DNA of 64,000 nt from Lepidodermella squamata (taxonomy: Eukaryota > Animalia > Gastrotricha), in contig JBLDXI010000026.1 in assembly GCA_047495785.1 (NCBI GenBank), forward strand, positions 1,364,001 through 1,428,000. Direction: 5' to 3'. Of the stretch, positions 15,456 through 63,100 are shown in pieces. Within the stretch, counting starts at the first letter, position 1; the number at the start of each line of letters is the position of its first letter. The notes under the pieces are model-generated. The model searched no databases and was not told where the DNA came from. It saw only the letters and a list, made by a program, of their open reading frames with translations. Both the position numbers and the translations under genes were made by a program.

Positions 15456-17159
15456 CTACCAGCCGTTATTGTGGTTGTTATAATTATTATTATTATTACT
15501 AGGCGCCGACCCACCGAACGGCGAACGGCCGCCGGTGTTCCCGAAGTAAGACCCGGGTTGATGGGGAGGAAACTGGTAGGCCGAGGAACCTGACGAAGAC
15601 GACGACTTAGCGGGCGGGGCGGATTGGTGCATCGATGACGCCCCGGAATCAGAAATTTCAGATGACTGACTCCACTATAAACAACAGACAACAACAATAA
15701 TCCAAAAAGAAAGCAAAAATGTAGGGAAAAAACTTGCAAAACTGAACAAATAATTTCTTTCCGCTTTGTACGCCATACCATAAAAAAATTCGTTAAATAC
15801 CTGACTCATCACTGCGGTTAGAGCTTGAGCTAACAAAGCCGGGTTTAACAGCGGATTCTGAGATGGCTGCGAAGATTGGCCTCCAGATGAAGAGAGGAGA
15901 GGTGGCGGTTGAGGTGGGCGTCGATTGTGCTGCGGAACTGGGGGAGGGCCGCCTTGCATCGGGCCGTTTAATCGCCTGGCTGGCGGCCCAGACATCTGAT
16001 AACGATCTGAAGACCCGCCACGATGTTCAGAGGGTGGATATTTCGAATAACCCGGCGACTCTGGGTAGCCATAGCTATCCGGATAACCGTCCCAGGAGTT
16101 GTCATTTGTATAGCCGTAAGTCATCGGTGAAGATGTGTAGCCTCTTTTAGGCCGAGAAACGCTTCCTACAAGCTCGGCATCGCCGGCGTCAGAATTAGCG
16201 GAACTAGCTGAAATCGCTGAGCTAAATGAAGGCATTACATTTGAAGGCTGTTTTGATTTCGGCGGAGTGGCGTAAGAAATCTGAACACTCTGATCCTCGA
16301 TAATCATATTTCGCCCAACCAATGACCGAGCGATCTCAGGATCTTTGAATGTGACAAAAGCCCACCTGCGAAATGGATGAGGCACAAAAACATCCAGCAC
16401 TTCGCCGTGTTTTGAGAAATAGCTCCTTAGCGTGTCATCGGAGATTTCTTGATTCAAACGACCTATGAAAATGCGACGGTCATAACCGCCGCCCGAGGAG
16501 CGAATTCCACGTGATAAATCCCCGCCATCTCGCATTACTTGGTCCATCAGCTGAGAATTCGGGATTTTCACATCACACCAACGACCGTCGATAATGTGCC
16601 GCAACACTAAGACTTTTTCTTGAACTTCATAGTCTGAAAATCGGATGAAACCAAATCCTCTCGAAGCGCCGTTTCCATCTCGCTTTATATCGCAAAATAC
16701 GACATCTCCGAATTTTTCGAAATATGTTTTCAAGCTTTGATTGTTCATGTGATATGGTATACTTTGCACCAATAAATCCACGCATTTCTTTTCCAACTTT
16801 TTCGGTTTACTTGAAGCAGTTGTGCCTATCTCTTCCTCGGCTTTCCTCTTATGATCTTTAGGAAAGGTGACAATGTAAACATCATCAGCTTTCCACCCGT
16901 TTTCCGGCGGATAAAGGTAATTTTCGGCGAGTTTAATTCCTCGATAACGCCCCGTTTCGGCGTGTTTGAATTTCAGACACGTGGCTCCAGGAAATTGTGC
17001 CTGTAATGTTGAGAGAGGCATAGTTCCACTAGGTTCGACCGGAAGCTCAATCGCATCGCTCTCGTTACCTTCCTCGGACACCAAGATATAAGAGACATGG
17101 CTTGGTGATAAAGACGATGAAGGTTCCGGCTTCGGGGAGTCTTTCGTGTCTTCAGACAT
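15456..17159 (-). CDS. TARDBP: TAR DNA-binding protein 43 homolog (exons 17159-15801, 15674-15456)
   Basis: N-terminal domain (AIELPVE..LSTLQAQFPGATCLKF), basic NLS, two RRMs (RGFGFIRF; PFRRWAFVTF), conserved helix NPALLAQALTAVMSQ|W, low-complexity tail ending ..NNGW*. Confidence 0.95.
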
Positions 17160-49003: not shown

Positions 49004-49794
49004 GGAAACGTCAAGGAACTGAACGGCTCAAACATTTTCAGCTGCGGAAAATGTAAATAATAATTTTAATTGCAACTGTTGCATTTCACAGAAAATTAAA
49101 TGTTATTACCCTTTTTGAAATTTGTTTCAAAAGCTTACATGACTTTGAAACATATTTCACACGAAAAAAGCGACGACAAAAAAGTGGAGTGATCGCTTTC
49201 AGAAGATCTCGGTTCTCGGTTCTACGCACCCTGTACCCTGTACCAAATTGCCAGAAGATGCGCCTCTGCAGAAACGCCGTAACCATCATTGGTAATCGTA
49301 TCGTACGCTTGTAACCAATGGTGGAGATGTGGGGTCTTTCATCCTGAACGCCCTAAATGCTAAATGGACTGTTGCGTCCCGCGCCCTATCAACCACCAAT
49401 CATTAATTATTGACATTTGAAATAAGCTTCCGCGTTACGTTTATGCACTAGTTACCAGTTGCGCCCTACATGTCCTTTTGTTAAAGCTCTTGAAAGCGTT
49501 GAGAGACCGCTGGAGATATACTTGTCGGACGTGTAAGCTTTCCTTAGGTATTAGACGGTGCAAAAGCTGCGGAGCTTCCAAAGAAGACCAAAACCTAGGA
49601 TTTAGTGCCTGGAATGATTTATAGAGTTGTTTCTTCCCTTATTTTTCATATTACAATCAATTGGCGGTTCGCGATAAATGCCATTGATCTATTTTGTAGA
49701 AGTGTTGAAGGTCTAATAATTGCTACTTGCATATCCAGCTGCTTATTCACGAGTTTATCTGATTTAGGGAACCGTAGAATAAATATAGTTGATA

Positions 49795-52087
49795 ATGGCG
49801 GCTCAACCTGGATTTTTGGAAGCTGTTGCGCGTGCTCGACAAGTGGCCGAAAAAATGCAACAGCAAAAGCGAGGTTTGGAGTCTGGAGGTGAAGAAGATG
49901 GCGGAAAACGATTCCGATCAGACAATTCACTCGGGTTCGCTGCCAACAGTTACAACTCGCCAACTTCAAATTCCCAGTCTGCATCTGAATCAAGCAACCA
50001 AGGGCCCGTTGATCCTCTGCAGAAAGTGAAAGAGGTTGGTCAATATAAATGTATAATGTATAATGTCACGTAATTTCAACAACTTATTTAGGTTGCTGCT
50101 CGCTTGAATCAACAAGTCGCTGTAATGAAAGGCATGCCAGCCGCTGATGGCAACGGTGTTCAAGACGAATTCTGGGTGCCTGAGCGCCTAGTTGGTCTTG
50201 TAATAGGCAAGGGCGGTGAAACAATCTCGCGTCTCCAAGCCGAATCCGGTGCTCATATGCAAGTTGATCAACGTAAGAATAATTTTATTTGACCCGAGAT
50301 TATTGCTAAATTTGATGCTTTTTAAAGTCAGCAATGGTGGACCTGAGCGCCGTTGCATGCTTTCTGGGCCAAGAGATGCTGTTGAGTAAGTCTGAAACCA
50401 TACTATGTCTTTTCTTTTCAACCTCATTGTCGTTTTCATAGACGTATCAAAAATATGCTGCGTAATTTGGTGGAGCGTGGGAAAGGCCCCGGCATGGGCA
50501 TGCCTCCCGGTTCGGTTGTCGAAGAAATTGTTATTCCCGGCAACTTGGTTGGAATCGTCATCGGCAAGGGCGGCGAGCAAATCAAACAAATCCAGGAACA
50601 ATGTGGTGTTAAAATGGTCCTTATTCAAGATTCACATGAAATTAGTGAAGGCGGCAAACCCCTTCGTATTACCGGAGATGCTGAGCGAGTCAGAGTAAGC
50701 GGTTCAACAGCTTTAAATCAGGTCGATGCCTTATACTTTTCATTTTTAGAATGCGAAAGAAGTTGTTCAGAGAATCCTCTCTCAGAAAGAAGATGGCAAA
50801 TTCGGTGCTGGTCGTGGTAGGGGACGTGGTGGCTTCCCTCCGCCTCTGTTCTCAGGCGGCGTTGGTGAATACGGAGGCAGTGATTACTCTGCGTAAGTCT
50901 ATTTGAAATCAATTATATGAATTACCTCAATCATTCGCTTTGTAGTGGCACTTTTCGGTCGACTCGTGTCGAAGTCCCTAACAGCATTGTTGGTGGTATT
51001 ATCGGCAAGAGTGGTGAAATGATCCGTCGGATCTCCCAAGACTTTGGTGGTGTGAAAATGCAATTTGCTAACGATGCTGACCCGTCTACTGGAATGAAAG
51101 TCCTCGAAATAGGACCAGGCCCTGCTCAAGCTGTTGATGATTGTGCTAATTGCGTTAGAAAACTCGTCGACACTATGCAAAGCTCGAAAGGCGGCCGTCA
51201 AGCTGCCGATGCCGTTGCTATTTACCAGCAAATCAGGCAAGAAATGCCAACTGGTCAATATGGCCAGGGATCGATGTCAGGCTATTCCGGCCCCGATCCG
51301 TCTAAACTGTCGCCGTATGACCAAACAGAAATTTTCTTCCCCATTCCGTTCCGGAAGGCTGGTTACGTCATTGGCAAGGGTGGTTCGACCCTTCACGAAA
51401 TCATCCGCGAATCCGGCGCCCATATCGAAGTTTTGCGTGATACGAATGAGAAGGAGTTGATTGCAAGTGGCCAGCAACCAGAGTCAAAAACATTCCGTAT
51501 TAAAGGAATGGTGTCTCAAATCGAATCCGCGCTAAGAATCATCACGAATAAAGCTGGTATTCAACCGCCCCCTGGCTGGTGCACCCAGCCTCAAGATCTT
51601 GCGAGTTTGTACGCGTATTCCCTGGCAACAAATGGTAACGCCGAGGCAGCAGCCGCCGCAGTTGCAGCGGCAGCGGCCACTGCTGTCGATCCAATGGCGT
51701 CGTATTGGTACTCGCAAATGTACCAGCAACCTCAGGCTGGGGCTGCTGCCGCTGCTTACCCGGCAGCTGCTACCGGACAAGCTGCTGCAGCTGGTGCCGA
51801 CGCTGCCAACTACCCCGCTCCATGTATGAAGTTTTTAGCTATCTCCATTCGCAATTTTACAAGTTTATTTTCTAGCTGTAAACCCATCGACCGGCCAAGC
51901 TGACTATTCCGAAGCGTGGGCGCAATACTATCGTTCCCTCGGTCAACACGAATATGCCGATATGATATTAGCACAAGCCCGCGGCCAGCAAGCGGGAGGT
52001 CAAGCCGAGGAAACCAACGGAAGTCAAAATTCCGGGGCGCCTTCAAATTATCCAACATACCAGGGCAATGGATCATCACAGCATTAG
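49795..52087 (+). CDS. FUBP: Far upstream element-binding protein / PSI / KHSRP family (4 KH domains + Tyr-rich motif)
   Basis: N-terminal FLEAVARARQVA; four KH GxxG loops (IGKGGE, IGKGGE, IGKSGE, IGKGGS); last coding exon 51876-52087 encodes TGQADYSEAWAQYYRSLGQHEYADMI. Confidence 0.92.
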
Positions 52088-53524
52088 GTAAGTATTTTTG
52101 CAGTTGTTCAACTTTTTGAGATTTTGCGGATTAAGGCGGATTTTTAATTGATGCTTTCAATTGATATTTTTCCGATTTTTTGGGTGATTTTTAAAATTTA
52201 TTAGCAATTTCCGAGTTTGGCTCATTTTAAAGGCGATACGATGAGGCAACAGCTCAACGCTCATTTCGTAATAACTTTTCTGAACAATTTTCATGCATGT
52301 TCTCCAATGAAATTTTTGATATAACTTGAAATACTATCATTTAAATGTACAATATTCAAATTTTTTGCCCTAAAACGGGCGCTTCAATATTTCCAATTGC
52401 CATGTTTCTTTGTTGCAATTTGATAGGAGCCACAAAAGAATCGATTTCTCTCTTGTCCTGTTCATACACTGTGTTTTTTTGGATGATGATTTTGGACAAT
52501 TTTGCATTTTAAAACACAAAACAGCAACATCTTCAATTCGAAACGTATAACCAGCCGCGATCGTTGCTCTTCAACCGAACCAGCCGCAACAACAACAGCC
52601 GCCATCGTCTTTTTTTGTGTTCAATTTTTGTCTTCTTGAATATAATCATATATATTGCATACTATTTGTCTGTTGTACTAACTTTTTAAGGAGCGATTTT
52701 CGTGAGAATTTCACGGGCACAATCGCTTGTAATTTCCTCAGATTTTTTTGTAATATCCATGTACTTGCTATCGTTTTGCTTGATTCGCCGTTCTAGGTGA
52801 TCGACGCCACGTCGGAAACACACATGCAGTAGGTAAAACTTGATGAATTTTCCGTGAATTTTTGATTATATTACACAAGTGAAGTAGTTTTCAAATATTG
52901 ACTTGAAAGTTTCTTTTCAGCGATACTAATTTTGCCTCATTTCAATGAGATCTAATAATCTCTCTAAAATCACCCACACAGACAGGTTTGCATTTTTTGG
53001 AAATATTATTGATTGAATCGAAATATTGATAAAATTTGTCTACCATAATTTTCACTGTAAATATCTTTGGAGTTGATGATAATAATTTTCAATGTAAGTA
53101 ACGCGTAATTAGCGTTAAGGTACGTTTCTTTTCGAAGCTTTATATCTACCTATCTATAGAGTGAAATCATTGACTGTAATAACCTTGAATTAATTGTACC
53201 TACCTTAATTTGTCCTTTTTGTGAGAGAAAAATGATGAAATGAGAGCTGGTCGCGCGTGTTATTGCCTACTATTCACACTTTTATTATAGGACGACTACT
53301 ACACGTGATGAATTCGGTGTTTTGTTTTTTGATTGGTTCAAAATCGAAAGTGACTTCGGTTAATATAGATGAAAGTGAAGTAAAAGCGAAACAGCTCTTT
53401 GGCAAGAAACACGGCGGTTTGACGGAAATCAATATTTCTGGTGGTTATTTTTTTCATTCCCATTTCAACCAGGTTACATCCCATCACCGTCTTTTGCTTT
53501 TTAGTGGTTTATTTTTGTTGAAAA

Positions 53525-54129
53525 ATGAGTATAAGAGCCTTCAGCTCCGTTTTGTTACGATGTGCAAGTCGGTCAATTTCAAGGCCGCTAGCTGTTAATC
53601 ACGCCTCTTTCATCCGGTTTTGCTCTGGAGCGGCTGGCCCGGACGCGGCGGTTCGGGTGAAATTACCCGGTCACACGCACGCGGCGAGAAAAGCCATAGT
53701 CTACACTTGTAAAGTGTGTAAAACTCGGTCGGCGAAAACTTTTTCGAAGCTGGCGTACGAACGCGGTATCGTGATTGTGAAATGCCCTGGCTGCAGTAAC
53801 AACCACATAATTGCCGATCATTTAGGCTGGTTTGAAGGTTAGAAGATTGACTTGAAAAAAAATTAATTTTCAAGGTAAATTTTTATGCAGATTTCAAAGG
53901 TAAAACTATCGAAGAAGTGCTGAAAGGTCGGGGTGAAACCGTGCGAGTCGCAAATATTGCGTCTTCCGATGCTGAATTGACGAACGAAGACCTCGTCATG
54001 ATTGATGATTCGTTGTTGAAACAAAGCGTAATGACAAAAATCGAAGCGAAACCTTCGAAACAAAAGCCGGCGAAAAGTAATAAGTCGGAACAGCCTCTTT
54101 TATTGCCTGTTGATGATAAATCATTGTAG
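53525..54129 (+). CDS. DNLZ: DNL-type zinc finger protein (Hep1/Zim17), mitochondrial; 2 exons
   Basis: YTCKVCKTRSAKTFSKLAYERGIVIVKCPGCSNNHIIADHLGWF, exon 2 ..KTIEEVLKGRGE; mitochondrial-type presequence. Confidence 0.95.
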
Positions 54130-54177: not shown

Positions 54178-57100
54178 TTACAATTGAGTTGGATTATTTT
54201 GTTGCTGAGGGTTTGAAATGACGACTCCTCTCAAATCTAAGGGCATGCCCAGCGGCCGGCGCCGGTTCGGCTGGAAATCAACTTTGCGTAGGGTTGGGAC
54301 GTAATCAGGGGCGAGCCTGACTGGAATGGCGGGTATCTGTGGCACCTCCGGTAATTTTCGTTTGATTTCGGCGGTTGGAGCTGATGAAACGCCTGAAGAT
54401 GAAGTAGATGGAATATCGCTAATATTAGTCGGTGTCACAATTTCACTTTCAGGCGATGAAACAGGCGGCGTTAGGACGAGAGCGGGTGTTGGCACCCTGA
54501 CAGTCCCTGTTCGCGGCTGTGTCTCGGTTATCGTGCCATTTTTCACCCCGGAAAACCGAATTTCTCGTTTATTATTCGAATTTTCATTCCGGTTCGTCGA
54601 CGAGCTTTCAGGGCGGCGGAGAATAGGCGCCAAAGCGGCTCGATTCGCTATAGCAACCAGGCTCTGCATGGGCCTCGATGGCACCTGGTGTTTCTTGGCC
54701 TCGTGTTCTAAACCATTTTTCCACAGGTCAAGTAGAAGAAGTCCAGCGTAAATTTTTCCAGTGGTCAGTTGCTGAAATCCGACAGCTGGAATAAATCGAT
54801 TATAATCGCCAAAATAAAAATAAATTTTTGTTATTTACTTTCTTGAGGTGGCATCAGAAGATGCATTTTGCGTTTTGCATATTTCGGCCAAAATTTAGTG
54901 ACAATATTGCGCAGTTCCTGGTCGAGAGTGTGCATGGTTTTGACTGAAATTTCACAAAAAAATATTGAAATTCAATTAAACTTAATTCTTTTTACCTTCT
55001 CCGACTTTGATTTTCAGCGACTCTCGGACCAAAGCAAATAAAGTGGTGGTGAAATGAACGTTTTTACCATCCGTTAGCGGGATATTCATACGAATCAGCT
55101 TTCGGTAAGCCATTTTCGTAGGGCAGTTTATGCCAAAGCCAAGCGGCGGCTCCAGTTGGCGCACCAATTTATACATGTCCGAGAATGGAATTTTTCCACT
55201 GTCAAAAAATCCATTTTAAATTTGAGCTCATAGAATTTTATTCTCACCATCCATTCGGATCGTACTCCGACCAGTTGCGCACGAACTCGTCAAGGTGGTG
55301 AGGGCCCAAAATGGACGAATCACGGGTCAAAAACTCGAAATTATCCATGATTACTGCCACAAACAGATTGAGTAGCTGAAAAGAGAGACCAGTATTTATG
55401 CTCAAATTTCATAGAATCTTTTTTTGATTTTCACCAAAAATGTTGCGAGAAGAATGAAAGAAAGGAAGTAGATGTAGGCGCCAACATCCGTCCCACAAGA
55501 ATCACCCACAGCGTAGGGCGAGCAGGGCTTCCCGGAGGTACAACTCAACATGAGATCAGGCCATCCTTCGCCGGTCGTAATTCGAAATAACAGCAACAAC
55601 GCGTCGTAAAACGTTTGAAAACTCGCGTTTTTGTTGATTGACGAATCAGGTCGCAGTAGAATCGTGCCGAAAAGCTGCATCCCGATCACAGCATAGGCGA
55701 AATAGGCCATACCCATAAGCATGCAGACGTAGGGTAGGGCTTTAAAAGACTGGAGGAAGGTCCACAGAATGATGCGGATCGAGCGGACTCGTCTCATGAC
55801 TTTGATAAGACGCACAGTTCGGAAAAGTCTCAAAAATCCGATATCGAAGAGGTCCGGCTGGAAAAAAAACCGAAAATTCAAATGCGAAAAAAATCAAAAT
55901 TTCAAGTTACATTGACTTCTGAAATAACGACATCGATAATACTGACGCTGACAGTGAAGAAGTCGAAAACGTTCCAAATATCAGTGAAATATCCAACCTA
56001 ATATTTTTCGAATAAATGTAAATTCTTCGATATATTCGAAATAAATTACCAATCCATAAGCAATAATTCGGAGTAGAGCTTCGATTGCGAAAACTACAGC
56101 TCCAGCAAAATTTACGATATTTTCGAATTCATCATAACCATTCGCTTGATCAAAGTGCTGTGAAAAATGAAAAATTCAGAAAATTGCTATAAATTGTCAA
56201 AATTTTCAGACCTTCATCATCATAACGAGTGTTGTTAAAAAAACGAAGGCGATGACAAAGACTTCGAAGGGCGTTGATTCGACAAAATACCACATCCTCC
56301 GCCGAAAATCTGCTTCAACTGGTGGCAATCGAATATTGATCGGTTTTGCATTAATGACGTAATCGATGCAACGTTTAGAATTTTTATCAATTTCCTTATC
56401 TTCGCCTTGATTTTGAAACGTTACAACGATCAAGGCCACGAATACGTTGACCAAGAAAAATGGGCAGATAATTAAGAAAATGATGTAGAAAATCGCCATG
56501 CTTTGGTTGTAGGCCGGAAGTGGGCCTCGATTTACTTCAGTCGCCTCGATAGAATGAAGCATTACCCTAAGGAATAAATATTTCAATTGATCACGGAAAA
56601 TTCTAGGAAAACTCACGTTGGCCAGCCATCTCCTGTTGTAACAGTGAATAAGGTCTATAATTTTTTGAAAAATGTAGAAAAATCATAAAAAAATTAGAAA
56701 AATTCTTACTAGCATGGCCATGGGTAGATTGTCGTAATTGAAGTCATAGACCTGCCAAGTTCGGTCTTTCACGCCAACGACTTTGTTATCGTCATCGAAA
56801 ACAAACATCTGACCCTGGCATTCGTCCTCGGTCATTTTTATCGGATCGGTGCAGTAGAAAAATTTGCCGGCAAATAGTTGAATGGCCAGACAGGAGAATA
56901 TGTAATCGAACATGAAAAACATGATCAACACATTGACGACCTTGCCCAGCGATGCGATGAGGCACGATAGGACGGCTTGCAGCTTCGGAATTCGGCGAAC
57001 AGTTTTCAGCGGCCGAAGCACTCGGATGATTCGCAGCGATTTTACAGCGGTTGCATAGCCTCCTCTCAGCCCCAAAGCTCTAAATTCGAGAATTCAAATG

Positions 57101-60100
57101 ATGAGGAATATAATGAGAAAAGATTTTTCTTACTCGATTAGGAAGCTGACAAAAGCCGAGATGACGACAATGAAATCGATGATGTTCCACGGGTCGCGAA
57201 AATAGCTACCAGGATGAGCAACAACACCAAGGACAATCATCTAAAAAAATCAGTGATTCATCAGCACTGAGGCGATTAGACGCACTACTCACCTTGAGAA
57301 TCATTTCAGTCGTGAAAATAGCCGTGAATCCATAATCAAGGTAAGCAAGGGCTACATTGCCGTAAGCCTGTTAAAATAGACGGCATTAAAATTGCCTTGA
57401 AAAAAACCAGTATGGGCTACGATAAACATCCCTTATCTTTACAACGTAAAAATGGTGTAATTAATTTGTACACCGTTCAGAATATCAAATTTGCGCGTAG
57501 CGGACCAAAATTGACTTGGGTTTTGGGTGGAATTTTTTTTCGAAACTAAGTACCATTCTTAGAAAAATGTTGTTATTGATAGATAAGGGCTTCTCAACAC
57601 CGAACCCTTGGCGACCCCAAAATCAAAATTCTTACCAGGCTGCGACACCTAGCAATTTTTCTCATTTTTTATCGTTTTTCAGTAAGGGAAAAGGTGCTTG
57701 AAATTTCGAAATTCTATAAAATAAAAATCACTCAATTTACATCCACTTTCCAATAATTTCTTTAACCTTTTGATGAATTGGGCTCTTAACCGGATTTTCA
57801 GCCAGTTTTCAATCGAATAAATTGGGACACGAGCGAAGTGAGCTTTGGCTAACGCTATTTTTGAAGTTTTTACCTGGAAGAGTGACTGAAAATGAACCAA
57901 ATCTTCGCAATGTTCAAGCTTTATAAAAATCATCAGGCGACCCACAGAAAACCGGCCTGCGTCCCCCAGTTCGATAAGCCCTGCTATAGATTATACTAAG
58001 GACCCAGTTTTTTGGATCCCAGAAACCGAATACACTAGCTTTTCTCATACCTTGAGGTCAACAGGATCTTCAGCAGCCAGGGCTACTGTTGAGCCGCAAA
58101 TTGTAGCCAGAACAAAGAAATCAAAAATAGGATCACTGGCGATGTAAAAACAAACTCGTCGAAATCTGATAAATTAAAAAAAAATCGGTAAATGATGCCA
58201 ACAAAAAACCGCCATGCTAACATATTTCTCTGCTCGAAAATGTAAAAACTCGTGAAAGGCGGCATTGTAAGGAGGTCCGACTGAAATTGAGACATTTCCT
58301 TCTCAGCAGTTGTCATTCGTCGACCTCCAGCTTTGGTCGTGCTTTCTTCCTCACGCTTTTTTGGTTCATCACCCGGCGGCTTGTCTTCCTCGTCCTCGTC
58401 CTCATCTTCGTTCGAATTCATGGAAACATCATCGCCATTTTCATCGGTTGACGATCGACGCTTAACTTCACCAGTCTCGGACACTTCGACTTCATCATTA
58501 TTGGCTATGCTATCTACAGCGATAGCCAAAAACAGGTTCAAAAGCGTGTCTATCGAAAACAATTAGTAGAAAAATTAAAAAAAAAATTGGTTCAAACTCA
58601 CAAGTTCCGAAGACAACAACAACGAGAAAATATAGCGCGAAAATCATGCCGAATTTAAATATTCCGCCCTTCGATCTAACGCCATCAAACATTCGCTAAA
58701 AAATTATGAAATAATTTCATTTTCATGGGATAAAATTTTTACCGAATTACCTGAGGCCAATCTTTCGCGGTTGTGAGTTGGAATACAGTTCTTTGGGTGA
58801 ACAAAATTCAAAAAATATCGGGAAATTTGAGAAAATTTATACATGATAGCAGTAGGAAAGTCGTCGAAATGAAATGCCGGACGGCCGTCATCGAAATTGT
58901 AAGACCCGCCGAAAAGACTCATACCGAGCAGAGCGAAAACGATTAAAAATAACAGGAGAAAAACCAGCAGAGAAGCAATCGATTTCATAGCCCCACCAAC
59001 GTTCGTGACAAAAGTTTTCAGCTGCGGCCAATACCTTGTTAGTTTAAAGACTCGAAGCAGGCGGAAACAACGCAAAACTGCAATGCCAACAGCCCATTTC
59101 GGGTTGACTGATTGTAAAATCAACTCCAATACACTTCCGATAATTATCTGAGTTCGAAAAAAATTCGATATAAATTCGAAAAAGGCCAACTGATCTTACA
59201 ATAAACTCGAAGATATTCTGCTTTGAACGGAAAAATGTTCGAACTCCCATGGCAAACATTTTGATAGCAATTTCCAAGCAGAAGACCCCAGCGAAAATTA
59301 TCGCAAAAATATCTGAGCAAATTAACGAAAAAATGATGAAAAATATTGCTATTGAAAAAATTGCGTACGAAGGGTCCTGTCAAGCCATGTAGGCTGGTTG
59401 TAGAACTCCAGCCCCAGCGTGATCGCATTTAAAACCACGAATAAAATGATGACCCAGAAGAAAAATTGCGATTTGATGAAAATTCGCATCTGTCGCCGGA
59501 GTCTAGCGATGGGCGTCATAGATTTTAGTTTCTCCTCAGTTTCCTTCCGTTTCGCTTCTTCAGCCTTGTCCGTCTCCTCCTGCTGGGTGAACACATCGTC
59601 ACTAGCCTCGCCCGCATTCGGAACCGAGGACATGGAAAGCGAAGCTGTGCTTCGGAACAAACTTTTCCCACGCTTTCTAGACATTCGGGCGTCATTTTCT
59701 TTTCTCACTGGAAGCAAGTAGTGTAATGAATTGAGTTGTTTAGAACTATTAAGAGAAAAATACCGCTTATAATTCTGAGTTTTATCTCGTTGTCGACTGT
59801 AGAATCATTGAGCAGGGAATTTTCTGAAAAATTCACAGGTATTATAAGAATATTTGTTTCGTCAAAAATTATGAATACCGGCTGTGGTTATCCAAGCTAG
59901 GTAGCTGCTTAATTCTTTCGCAAACTGTTCCTGTCGATGTTTCCTCAAATATTGTCGTCTCTTTTCAACCCTTCCTCGCTCTTTCGCGAATTCACTAATT
60001 AACATAAAAAATTAAAATTTGGAATATTTTAAGGAGGCGTTTTTCAACTCACGCGCTCAAAACACCGAGTACCAAATTAAGCATGAAAAATGTCCCGACA

Positions 60101-63100
60101 ACGATGAGTAAGCAATAATAAATCCAGTTGAATTGCTTCCCATAAACCTGTAAACCGAAAATTGAGAAAAAATCGAAAATATAAATAATTTCGACTCACT
60201 CCATCGCACATGTACATCAAATCAGACCAACCCTCGGTCGTCACGCATTGAAAAACAGTCAGCATTGCGAAGCCAATGTTGTCGAAATTCGTTATGCCCT
60301 GATTTGGGCCGAGCCAATATCGACGGCAAGTTGCATTTTCCGAACAGATATTCGCTCCCGCTTTTGTAGAGCCGTCAGAAGCGCACGGCTTTGGATCGTC
60401 CCCACCGACAATTTTACCGGTTTGCTTATCGAAACACGTGTAGTGGAAAATTCCGACGTAAAACTGCATGCCGATAACTGAGAAAATGGCGATGACAAAC
60501 AGCAATATCGCCGCGATTTGCGACAATGGTCCCATGGCGGTTATAATTGCTTGCAAAATCACCCGGAGCGGTCGAATTCTATTGTAAAAAAAGTAAAATT
60601 TGACCAACATTTGAATAGGACAAACCGGGTCAGCAATTTTAAAGGCCTCAAAACTCGAAGTGTTCGAAGAAATGACAAATCGATTTGAGTGAACAGAATT
60701 GTGAGCCACCTTAAATAAATTCTTGAAGGAAATAGTTTCATCCCATCAAAATTTACCCAGCTATAACGACGATAAAATCGAGAAAATTCCAAAAATCGCG
60801 AAGATAAGCGCCTCGATTGAGAACAAGACCCATGGAAATAATTTTCACCGTAGCTTCAAATGTGAAAAATATGATGAAAGGTAGTTCGGCGTTGTTGAGA
60901 ATGAGGCTGATGGCAGCTTGATCGTCATTCGGTAAATTGACATCGATTGTCATTACAATAACGTTGGCAATGATGGCGCATATAACGACGTATTCAAACA
61001 CCCACCAGTTGACGAGTAGGGTGCATAGTGATCGAATGAGATTTTCTTCCCGGAATAGGTACAGCGAAACATTCGGTCGCGTCAACCACCGCCAGAGGCA
61101 GCCGAGCGAAACAGGCTCCTGAGGCTCATCTTCGTCTGGATTCCACGATTTTTTCGGTGTCTTCTGGCCGTGAAGAGGCGCTGAGGGGTCGCCGGTTGAT
61201 GGGGTTGACGAGGCGCCCTGGTAGACCATAGGCAGGGTTGTCATCCAGATCGGGGCGTTTTTCGGCGCCACCGACGCGCCTGGTCGCATTCGATTGCTAG
61301 GCCCGAAGGAAGTTTCATAAGCTGGATTGTTGACAGCAGGTGATAGCGGACGAGCAACATTCGGAGATTCCCTTAGCAATTAAATTAATGAATTTAAATG
61401 CTTGTTGGAAATGAGGCTATTGATCGAAGCTATATCAAAGCCTTGGGAGTGGAATAGTGAACCCTTACTTCATCAATTGTATTCAGATATGAACAGAGAA
61501 TGGGCCCTAATTTTGGCAAATAGCTTGGAGAATTCTCTAAGATATTTTGCAAGGGTCTAAAAAATAGCAACCCTAAATTTGAAATTCCAGCGTCCAGCAT
61601 CGTTAAGCATCATCTTTTAAATTTCCTTTACCGCAATAAACTTATACCTTTTAATCAATTCGGCTTCTTGTCAAGGCGCTCTAGTGAGACGCAACTTCTT
61701 TCTTGTATTATTGATTGGTTGAGAGCGTTAGACCTTGGTTTTGTTGTGGATATTATTTATTTAGACCTATCCAAGGCATTCGACACAGTTCCTATTTCGC
61801 TTCTTCTATCTCAACTTCTTAAAATTAATATTGTTGGCTGTGTATTTACTTGGCTTAAAGAGTTTCTCTCTGATCGATATTTTCGCGTTGTGACTGGCGG
61901 GGCGTTTTCAGAATGGGCGCCAGCTCCATCGGGCGTGCCGCAGGGTTCGGTTCTGGGACCCACGTTATTTATTATTTTCACTATATTTTCTAATGACGTC
62001 CTTACTAGTGCTATAGCCAAATATTTTGCGGATGATACGAAACTATACAAGGTGATACACTCTATTAATGACTGTCTTTCTTTACAACATGACCTTGATA
62101 ATATCACAACGTATTATAATACTAATGGGCTTTCCGTGAATCCTAAAAAGTGCGTGGTTCTTATAGATTGGGCAAAAGTGCTATCGATTTTGAATACACT
62201 ATAAATGGTAATAAATTGGTGCTCGAAAAAGTTGTTAAGGATCTCGGTGTATATATTGACAACCAGCTAAATCTTTCGTATAATACTTCTCAAGTAATTG
62301 ACAAATGTGCCCGAGTTACTAATGCTATATTTAAATGTTTTAAATCAAAAGAAATGCGACTGAAAGCCTTTAAAACACACGTTATACCTCTTGTTGAGTA
62401 TTGTCCTGCTGTAGCTTCTCCTATTTTACTTTCCGACATAGATGACCTAGAAAGTGTGCAAATTAATTTTACTAAAAAATTGTTATGTCCTGGCTCTTTG
62501 TTTTATACTTCTGTCGACGGTTTTAACTATGATGAACGACTGAAAAAACTTGACTTGCGAAAACTAGAGGAACGTCGTCTCATCAGGGATATTTGTCTCT
62601 GTCACAAAATGTATCAAAATACTGTTGATCTAAATTTTTATGATTTTTTTTCTATTTCTAGTCGCCGTAGAGCAGTTGCTCATGAAATTAGTTTTATACC
62701 TACAAATATTGATTCTTATAAATATTCCTTTGTTAGGCGTGTGAGGCCTCTCTGGAATTCAATACCTACTGATTATATTAATAATTCTCATAATAACTTT
62801 AAAAACTATGTTAAACAGCTCGACCTTAATAACTATTTGACGTCAGTAGTGAGGCGCCATGACATTTTGTACCTATGACCATTTCGCCACTGTTGTTCGC
62901 GAACAAGAAGAAGAATAAAGAATAAAGAATAAAGCAATAACATTCTCGGTTTCAGCCCTTTTATGACCTTTTATGTAGTAAAAATGTAGTAAAAATGGGT
63001 CACGCCAGTGAAATTTTAGGTGATTTTTGTAAGCCAGAAACGCGAGTTGGACTGAAATCAAACTCACCCTTCGAAAACAGCATCATCGTTAGCATCGACT

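Follow-up and report, generated by a model that had tools for sequence, protein, structure and literature searches.

A highly diverged Cav2-type channel gene of the gastrotrich Lepidodermella squamata with a lysine in its predicted selectivity filter

According to reviews, Cav1 and Cav2 calcium channels carry a ring of four glutamates (EEEE) in the selectivity filter from sponges and cnidarians to mammals, and protostomes keep single Cav1, Cav2 and Cav3 genes (PMC5095125, PMC6259924, PMC4436565). What, then, is to be made of a Cav2-type gene in which one of these four positions reads lysine? Such a gene lies on the minus strand, at 54178-61289, of a 64,000-nucleotide stretch of Lepidodermella squamata DNA (assembly GCA_047495785.1, contig JBLDXI010000026.1, positions 1,364,001 to 1,428,000), hereafter called the window. 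An earlier note, made from the letters alone, had described a Cav2-like channel with an E-K-D-E filter and proposed it as a candidate sodium or monovalent cation channel. We ask here whether the gene is what it seems to be, whether its lysine is real, and what a channel with such a pore would conduct.

Identity of the gene and of its filter ring

The gene model consists of 25 coding exons which join into a single open frame of 1735 codons, ending in a TAA at 54180-54178 (minus strand) and encoding a four-domain protein of 1735 residues. All of the introns (24 of 24) are GT-AG and most are about 50 nt long; the reading frame, which to the earlier note looked intact, is open across the whole model. 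Most exon joins could be cross-checked against an ortholog introduced below (locus L001), which codes for the matching stretches either free of introns or with the same micro-exons. The predicted selectivity ring is E321-K684-D1060-E1344, and its codons and two micro-exons fall in the assembled model exactly where the earlier note had placed them:

54178..61289, minus strand: predicted Cav2-type alpha1 subunit, whole gene model (from assembly, translation, Pfam and PDB matches)
60233..60235, minus strand: GAG codon of E321, domain I filter position
58763..58765, minus strand: AAA codon of K684, domain II selectivity-filter (high-field-strength) position
58751..58790, minus strand: micro-exon 10, 40 nt, domain II P-loop, with acceptor ACCCAAAG and donor GTAATT
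56617..56654, minus strand: micro-exon 17, 38 nt, domain III P-loop, with D1060 at 56630-56628
55567..55569, minus strand: GAA codon of E1344, domain IV filter position

The column of K684 is homologous, in an unambiguous alignment, to the domain II glutamate of about 90 full-length relatives, which read VFQILTGEDWN at this point. The aspartate that follows the domain II filter position is kept (AKDW, i.e. K-D-W), and each of the four P-loops has a TT ahead of its filter position. When all six frames of the window were scanned for P-loop motifs, exactly four came up, in order and on one strand, so that the different domain II P-loop exon which the earlier note had thought might appear in the mRNA has no counterpart anywhere in the 64 kb. 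An alternative glutamate-coding exon of the NALCN kind can be ruled out, because the window holds only these four P-loops and the introns on either side of the lysine exon measure 52 and 55 nt.

Several comparisons bear on the family to which the protein belongs. A search of the PDB with the domain II S4-S5 exon returned Cav2.1 first (1.6e-43), followed by Cav2.2 and Cav2.3, with weaker matches to Cav1 (about 1e-36), Nav (1e-25 or weaker) and NALCN (about 1e-12). Pfam recognises Ion_trans in exons of all four domains and GPHH at 2.3e-15, while Ca_chan_IQ is recovered in three exon pieces (profile positions 1-17, 22-52 and 55-74), each of which is under the gathering score when taken alone. The domain III motif has the Cav2-type glycine (TGxGWP) and not the Cav1-type phenylalanine. 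The domain IV exon served as the query in an exhaustive search of 1.84 billion representative proteins; the best full-length relatives are the Cav2 proteins of Schistosoma japonicum, Drosophila (cacophony), Branchiostoma, Saccoglossus and Littorina, at about 44% identity over about 1500 residues, and a single protein exceeds about 60% identity in domain IV, a 458-residue metagenome open reading frame (ORF; P0004/P0151, 72%).

Maximum-likelihood trees were built under LG+G4 and under LG+C20 with posterior mean site frequencies (PMSF), with support from the Shimodaira-Hasegawa-like approximate likelihood ratio test (SH-aLRT). They place the window protein within the Cav2 clade with 100% support and as a 100% pair with L001 inside bilaterian Cav2 (97 under LG+G4, 99 under LG+C20), which supplies the phylogeny with Cav1, Cav2, Cav3 and Nav that the earlier note had proposed. 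Under LG+C20 the protein falls in an unresolved protostome group, and its very long stem leaves its place within the protostomes unsettled: the stem of the window clade is about 1.0 substitutions per site, several-fold longer than other bilaterian Cav2 lineages. In a domain IV tree the clade groups with the rotifer Seison, under a long-branch warning. The PDB ranking, the Pfam domains and the tree placement all agree, and the Cav2-like identity first suggested for the gene product, which is to say a high-voltage-activated (HVA) alpha1 subunit, is confirmed as far as sequence comparison reaches. The gene may be the only Cav2 ortholog of a fast-evolving lineage and not an extra paralog. The family feature that it fails is EEEE itself (PMC5095125, PMC4436565), from which both the window ring (E-K-D-E) and the ortholog ring (E-E-D-E) depart.

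Outside the pore, the S4 segments of all four domains keep their ladder of arginines and lysines, in agreement with the four intact voltage sensors of the earlier note, and regions resembling those that bind regulatory proteins can be recognised:

60563..60678, minus strand: domain I S4, split by intron 2
59028..59081, minus strand: domain II S4
56980..57048, minus strand: domain III S4
55774..55839, minus strand: domain IV S4
59822..59936, minus strand: AID-like motif in the I-II linker, spanning intron 5 (Y-x-x-W-I core identified by eye)
54715..55306, minus strand: proximal C-terminus with GPHH, pre-IQ and IQ-like parts (GPHHLDEF...), exons 22-25

The AID (alpha interaction domain) is described as a hallmark of Cav1 and Cav2 (PMC5095125), and the AID-like motif, a putative beta-subunit site, is conserved in L001 as well. 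The ortholog protein P0151 carries PF16905 and PF08763. An acidic C-terminal PDZ ligand for RIM and Mint, D/E-x-W-C, is described for Cav2 (PMC7456537); the window protein, with its short C-terminus, lacks it, and the ortholog ends in ...PPQLPFV.

Membership of three other families was considered and rejected. In the case of NALCN, whose S4 segments are weakly charged, the PDB match is about 1e-12 as against 1e-43 for Cav2, the full S4 ladders, AID and IQ are present, and the similarity is confined to the EKxE-like ring. Nav1 and Nav2 are excluded by domains I and IV, which read Glu and not Asp or Ala, and by PDB matches of about 1e-25 or weaker; the Nav2-like proteins P0105 and P0113 form a distant outgroup in the tree. 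Cav3, which has an EEDD ring and a gating brake, is excluded by the Glu of domain IV and the AID-like motif, and the Cav3-like representative P0147 falls outside the HVA clade.

The lysine codon in a relative and in a DNA run

The sole close relative that we found is a syntenic channel gene in ENA metagenome ERZ23486787, scaffold_2130 (locus L001, proteins P0004/P0151). A tblastn comparison of the window model with this locus recovers the whole protein; 59% of the residues are identical overall, rising to 66-70% in the membrane domains. The two genes share the 40-nt domain II micro-exon, in the same phase, and the domain III micro-exon, and L001 has far fewer introns. Its ring is E-E-D-E: the domain II micro-exon codes for TIFQITTSEDWHM, and the filter codon is GAG instead of the window's AAA. 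Thus L001 has a serine before the domain II site, a histidine after the tryptophan, an aspartate in domain III and the TT motifs, yet a glutamate in domain II. From this comparison the domain III aspartate, the TT motifs and the odd residues flanking the domain II site are properties of the clade, and the domain II lysine is a change specific to the window's lineage. The earlier note had argued that changes next to the lysine speak against an isolated base-call error, and this argument falls, because equivalent changes occur in L001 alongside a glutamate and so cannot vouch for the lysine. Nor were the lysine-bearing orthologs found that it had proposed to look for in relatives, since the only ortholog reads glutamate. 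JGI metagenomes scanned with clade peptides yielded no further member of the clade; among 5.8 billion proteins searched with the ortholog sequence P0151 there was nothing above 56% identity, and a protein search with the window's domain II ORF gave nothing close. Three other metagenome Cav2 loci (L002-L005), from other samples, are canonical EEEE genes.

Is the lysine then truly in the genome? A DNA run, X1, available in the form of short assembler contigs, contains 67% of the sampled words. Its contig covering 58530-58767 (depth 43.6) has no differences from the window and includes the AAA codon, so that the lysine codon is present in the assembly and in one DNA-run contig. X1 holds two haplotypes of about 45x each, as in a contig pair at 56138-56383 with 0 and 15 differences from the window, and there are some sites at which all contigs depart from it. 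The table of differences between X1 and the window lists 40 of 241; 29 of these 40 are exonic and 11 intronic, and every one of the exonic differences (29 of 29) is synonymous. This supports the reading frame and shows strong purifying selection on the protein among the sampled haplotypes, and it tells against the neutral evolution that the earlier note had allowed for. At 0.33, the terminal branch of the window protein does not exceed that of the glutamate-bearing L001 (0.37), and hence the gene bears no trace of decay since Glu became Lys. Judged by these substitution patterns, the gene is real, intact and under purifying selection.

These same data bear on the view that the lysine stems from a rare allele, from a variant that is somatic or confined to the assembly consensus, or from a G-to-A error, the functional protein having the E-E-D-E ring typical of the clade. 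The only ortholog has GAG in the same micro-exon, a single first-position transition (GAA to AAA) would suffice, and heterozygosity in the sample is very high: at 56138-56383 its two haplotype contigs differ by about 6%, and 40 of 241 differences are listed. On the other side, a contig identical to the window spans the codon, which lies outside any long homopolymer, and non-synonymous polymorphism must be rare in a gene whose 29 listed exonic differences are all synonymous. In addition, the end of that contig at 58767 fits a merging of the two haplotypes 30 nt past the variant at 58737; if this is what explains the contig end, both haplotypes would share AAA. We regard an allele or error of this kind as rather unlikely.

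A further way to reconcile an AAA codon with a glutamate is A-to-I editing of the transcript, which would recode AAA (Lys) to IAA (read as Glu) and allow one gene to provide both Ca2+-selective and non-selective pores. Recoding of pore sites by RNA editing occurs in other channels, and the codon logic (AAA to GAA) would allow for it here. For exon 10 with both flanking introns the minimum free energy is -17.8 kcal/mol, whereas shuffled sequences average -20.4 (z +0.85), and the ortholog region is equally without a stable fold (z +0.61). We therefore consider editing very improbable.

Predicted permeation through an E-K-D-E pore

On balance we lean towards the following reading: the gene is a constrained, highly diverged protostome Cav2-type gene whose clade moved from EEEE to E-E-D-E and whose own lineage then acquired a lysine in domain II, with a current that would be carried mainly by monovalent cations. 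The first step would be the change of the clade ring from EEEE to E-E-D-E, and the second the replacement of the domain II glutamate by lysine in the window's lineage to give E-K-D-E. The ammonium group of the lysine would then lie within the residues that together make up the one high-affinity Ca2+ site, and both Ca2+ binding and block by Ca2+ would be greatly weakened. Opened by depolarisation, such a channel would pass mainly monovalent cations (Na+ inward) and little Ca2+, while its voltage sensors, beta-subunit site and calmodulin/IQ region would stay Cav-like.

A weak Ca2+ site is expected from the mutagenesis and comparative literature on lysine-bearing rings. Natural pores with a lysine in domain II (NALCN EKEE and cnidarian Nav2.5 DKEA; PMC6259924, PMC5095125) or in domain III (Nav1 DEKA and NALCN EEKE; PMC5095125, PMC6259924, PMC4436565) are classed as Na+-selective or non-selective without exception among those listed in the reviews. 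In Cav1, single E-to-K mutants have strongly reduced Ca2+ affinity and pass large monovalent currents (PMC2229453). By analogy with these pores a loss of Ca2+ selectivity from E-K-D-E is plausible. The background given in the earlier note, namely that Cav1 and Cav2 have EEEE and that a filter lysine distinguishes pores which are Na+-selective or non-selective, is upheld by the same three reviews.

Several points weigh against this reading. The lysine depends on a single codon seen in one lineage, with glutamate in the nearest relative. The supporting contig reaches just 2 nt past the codon, and with 40 of 241 differences listed, a K/E polymorphism in the population may be compatible with what is seen; X1 may also be the same sample as the assembly. 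A search for sequencing runs returned two of unknown kind, both as contigs, and none of RNA. The cited E-to-K data concern repeat III of Cav1 and not repeat II of Cav2. Finally, the ring alone does not predict selectivity, as the snail Cav3 illustrates (PMC5095125), and the retained domain II aspartate (K-D-W) could partly compensate for the lysine.

A first rival view is that the channel stays a Ca2+-preferring HVA channel, in which the E, D and E of the ring, the aspartate just after the domain II position and residues of the outer vestibule make up for the lysine. The conservation of that aspartate (AKDW) would suit it, as would the observation that turrets and outer residues also set selectivity, for which exon 12 of snail Cav3 is the example (PMC5095125); and if this is the organism's sole Cav2, transmitter release would presumably need Ca2+ to enter through it. 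It has to contend with the uniform classing of natural domain II and III lysine pores as Na+-selective or non-selective and with the strong loss of Ca2+ affinity after single E-to-K changes in Cav1 (PMC2229453). We think a Ca2+-preferring channel unlikely, albeit the least so of the rivals considered here.

A second view accepts the lysine and holds that the channel essentially does not conduct Ca2+ and acts as a voltage sensor or scaffold, or else that it is a very recent loss-of-function allele which has yet to decay. There is a precedent in SkEIIIK, the skeletal dihydropyridine receptor (DHPR) with E(III)K, which lacks inward Ca2+ current and can nevertheless set off Ca2+ release (PMC2229453). 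The window protein has an altered pore but conserved voltage sensors, AID and IQ region, and its C-terminus is without the D/E-x-W-C ligand that PMC7456537 gives for Cav2. Purifying selection, however, acts on pore and non-pore exons alike, and the protein has not evolved faster than its E-bearing ortholog. Moreover, since the Cav1 E-to-K mutants pass large monovalent currents (PMC2229453), a non-conducting pore is not what would be expected. This view we hold to be improbable, marginally more so than a rare allele or error at the codon. Preferring, then, the diverged Cav2-type gene with a mainly monovalent current, we turn to a bolder form of it that seems to us possible at best: the window gene would be a fourth independent lysine-bearing four-domain pore, arisen within Cav2, and would encode a voltage-gated Na+ or mixed monovalent channel, regulated by beta subunits and calmodulin, that aids electrical excitability in a fast-evolving protostome, with the E-E-D-E sister gene as the intermediate.

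If this were true, it would mean that an HVA calcium-channel scaffold can take the lysine route to Na+ selectivity that reviews give for the Nav lineage (DEKA, DKEA) and NALCN (EKEE/EEKE) only. The window gene and its E-E-D-E ortholog would form a matched natural pair for testing the role of a domain II lysine in Na+/Ca2+ discrimination on an HVA background. And if the gene is the only Cav2 of this organism, what carries presynaptic Ca2+ entry becomes a question.

Surroundings of the gene and comparison with known channels

The 5' end of the gene may reach further upstream than the modelled ATG. Likeness to L001 persists upstream of it as far as about 61380, where a splice acceptor may lie, and a first exon looked for further upstream was not found. 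A 39-codon out-of-frame ORF lies at 61241-61360 (minus strand), its ATG preceding the modelled start within a stretch that resembles the ortholog N-terminus; it could be an upstream ORF, or else translation starts in an exon further upstream. On the plus strand at 61668-62878, antisense to the channel gene and directly ahead of its first recognised exon, a fragment of a reverse transcriptase (Pfam RVT_1, 4.3e-16) precedes an ORF with no Pfam match, and this fragment may sit in a 5' intron or the promoter region of the channel gene. The gene has one long intron:

57368..58050, minus strand: intron 13, sole long intron, 683 nt, holding a high-copy repeat

Within it, at 57567-57960, word depth in X1 rises to 1060-1313 from about 90 elsewhere in the gene, with many loose ends, internal skips of 161-272 nt and an ORF without a Pfam match; these features suggest a repeat of high copy number and variable length, or else a small mobile element.

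A FUBP-like KH-domain gene and a zf-DNL (DNLZ-like) gene adjoin the channel gene in both loci (window 49789-53842, plus strand; L001 1-1958). In L001 the channel is inverted relative to this pair, with trypsin-like and LamG-like genes lying between, two more than in the window. Further away in the window, at 15678-17159 (minus strand), is a single-exon TDP-43 homolog with TDP-43_N and two RNA-recognition motifs. Its top named matches are from ticks and insects, and its identity to public proteins is at most 46-47%, from which the genome appears to be fast-evolving and isolated. Rfam and tRNA scans of the window gave no matches.

In full-text literature searches we found no paper with an EKDE filter, and EEDE was confined to an engineered T-type mutant and to channels from outside the animals; the earlier impression that this filter had gone undescribed in Cav1/Cav2-type channels thus holds across the papers searched. 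Among 297 fetched channel proteins, K, R or H at a filter position occurs in no HVA channel and once in all, at domain III of a Nav1-type protein. A degenerate DNA pattern (T[VIM]FQ.xTxKDW) for a lysine-bearing domain II P-loop of HVA type, run over JGI metagenomes, gave one bacterial chance match only.

With the bilaterian Cav2 channels (vertebrate Cav2.1-2.3, cacophony and those of schistosomes and molluscs) the window protein shares its architecture, S4 segments, AID, GPHH/IQ region, domain III glycine and clade; it differs in its identity of about 44%, its stem of about 1.0, its E-K-D-E ring in place of EEEE, its TT motifs and the absence of an acidic-WC end. With L001 it shares the micro-exons, the domain III aspartate, the TT motifs and the FUBP/zf-DNL neighbours, and differs by the domain II lysine. 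Departures from EEEE within Cav2 exist elsewhere: two Cav2-clade paralogs of Hydra vulgaris, XP_065647840 (P0039) and XP_065647837 (P0111), have the rings E-E-D-D and D-E-D-D, and one of them shares the window's domain I motif. The Hydra rings are, however, all-acidic and without lysine, and these proteins are distant from the window clade in the trees. Going by these sequences, Cav2 filters are less uniform than reviews say, though the Hydra exceptions are all acidic. Two oyster proteins may be mentioned beside them. Crassostrea P0005 (XP_078326088, isoform X17) is an otherwise canonical Cav2 with VFQILTGADWNE, i.e. an alanine at the domain II filter position, which could reflect an alternative exon or an annotation artefact. 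Saccostrea echinata P0022 (XP_061188059) is a divergent second Cav2-like protein with a terminal branch of 1.7, TAEDW in domain II and VITTGEGW in domain III, so that extra fast-evolving Cav2-type genes exist in at least one spiralian.

Lysine-bearing pores outside natural Cav2 channels offer three further comparisons. The L-type mutants CEIIIK and SkEIIIK place, like the window, one lysine in an HVA EEEE locus; these are laboratory constructs of repeat III in Cav1, whereas the window gene is natural, altered in repeat II of a Cav2-type channel and furnished with a domain III aspartate besides. Yang et al. (1993) reportedly made a series of such E-to-K mutants of L-type channels. In cnidarian Nav2.5 (DKEA) and bilaterian Nav1 (DEKA), independent changes from Glu to Lys made Ca2+-preferring channels Na+-selective (PMC5095125). 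Both derive from the Nav2 lineage and have an Asp in domain I and an Ala in domain IV, while the window protein is by phylogeny a Cav2 and keeps three carboxylates. The EKEE ring of NALCN, found in flatworms, in a leech and through alternative exon 15 in lophotrochozoans, has a domain II lysine in an acidic ring with a similar net charge. NALCN belongs to another family, without AID, GPHH or IQ, and has an alternative Glu exon where the window has none; even so, by analogy of the ring, NALCN EKEE may be the closest natural analogue of how the window pore works.

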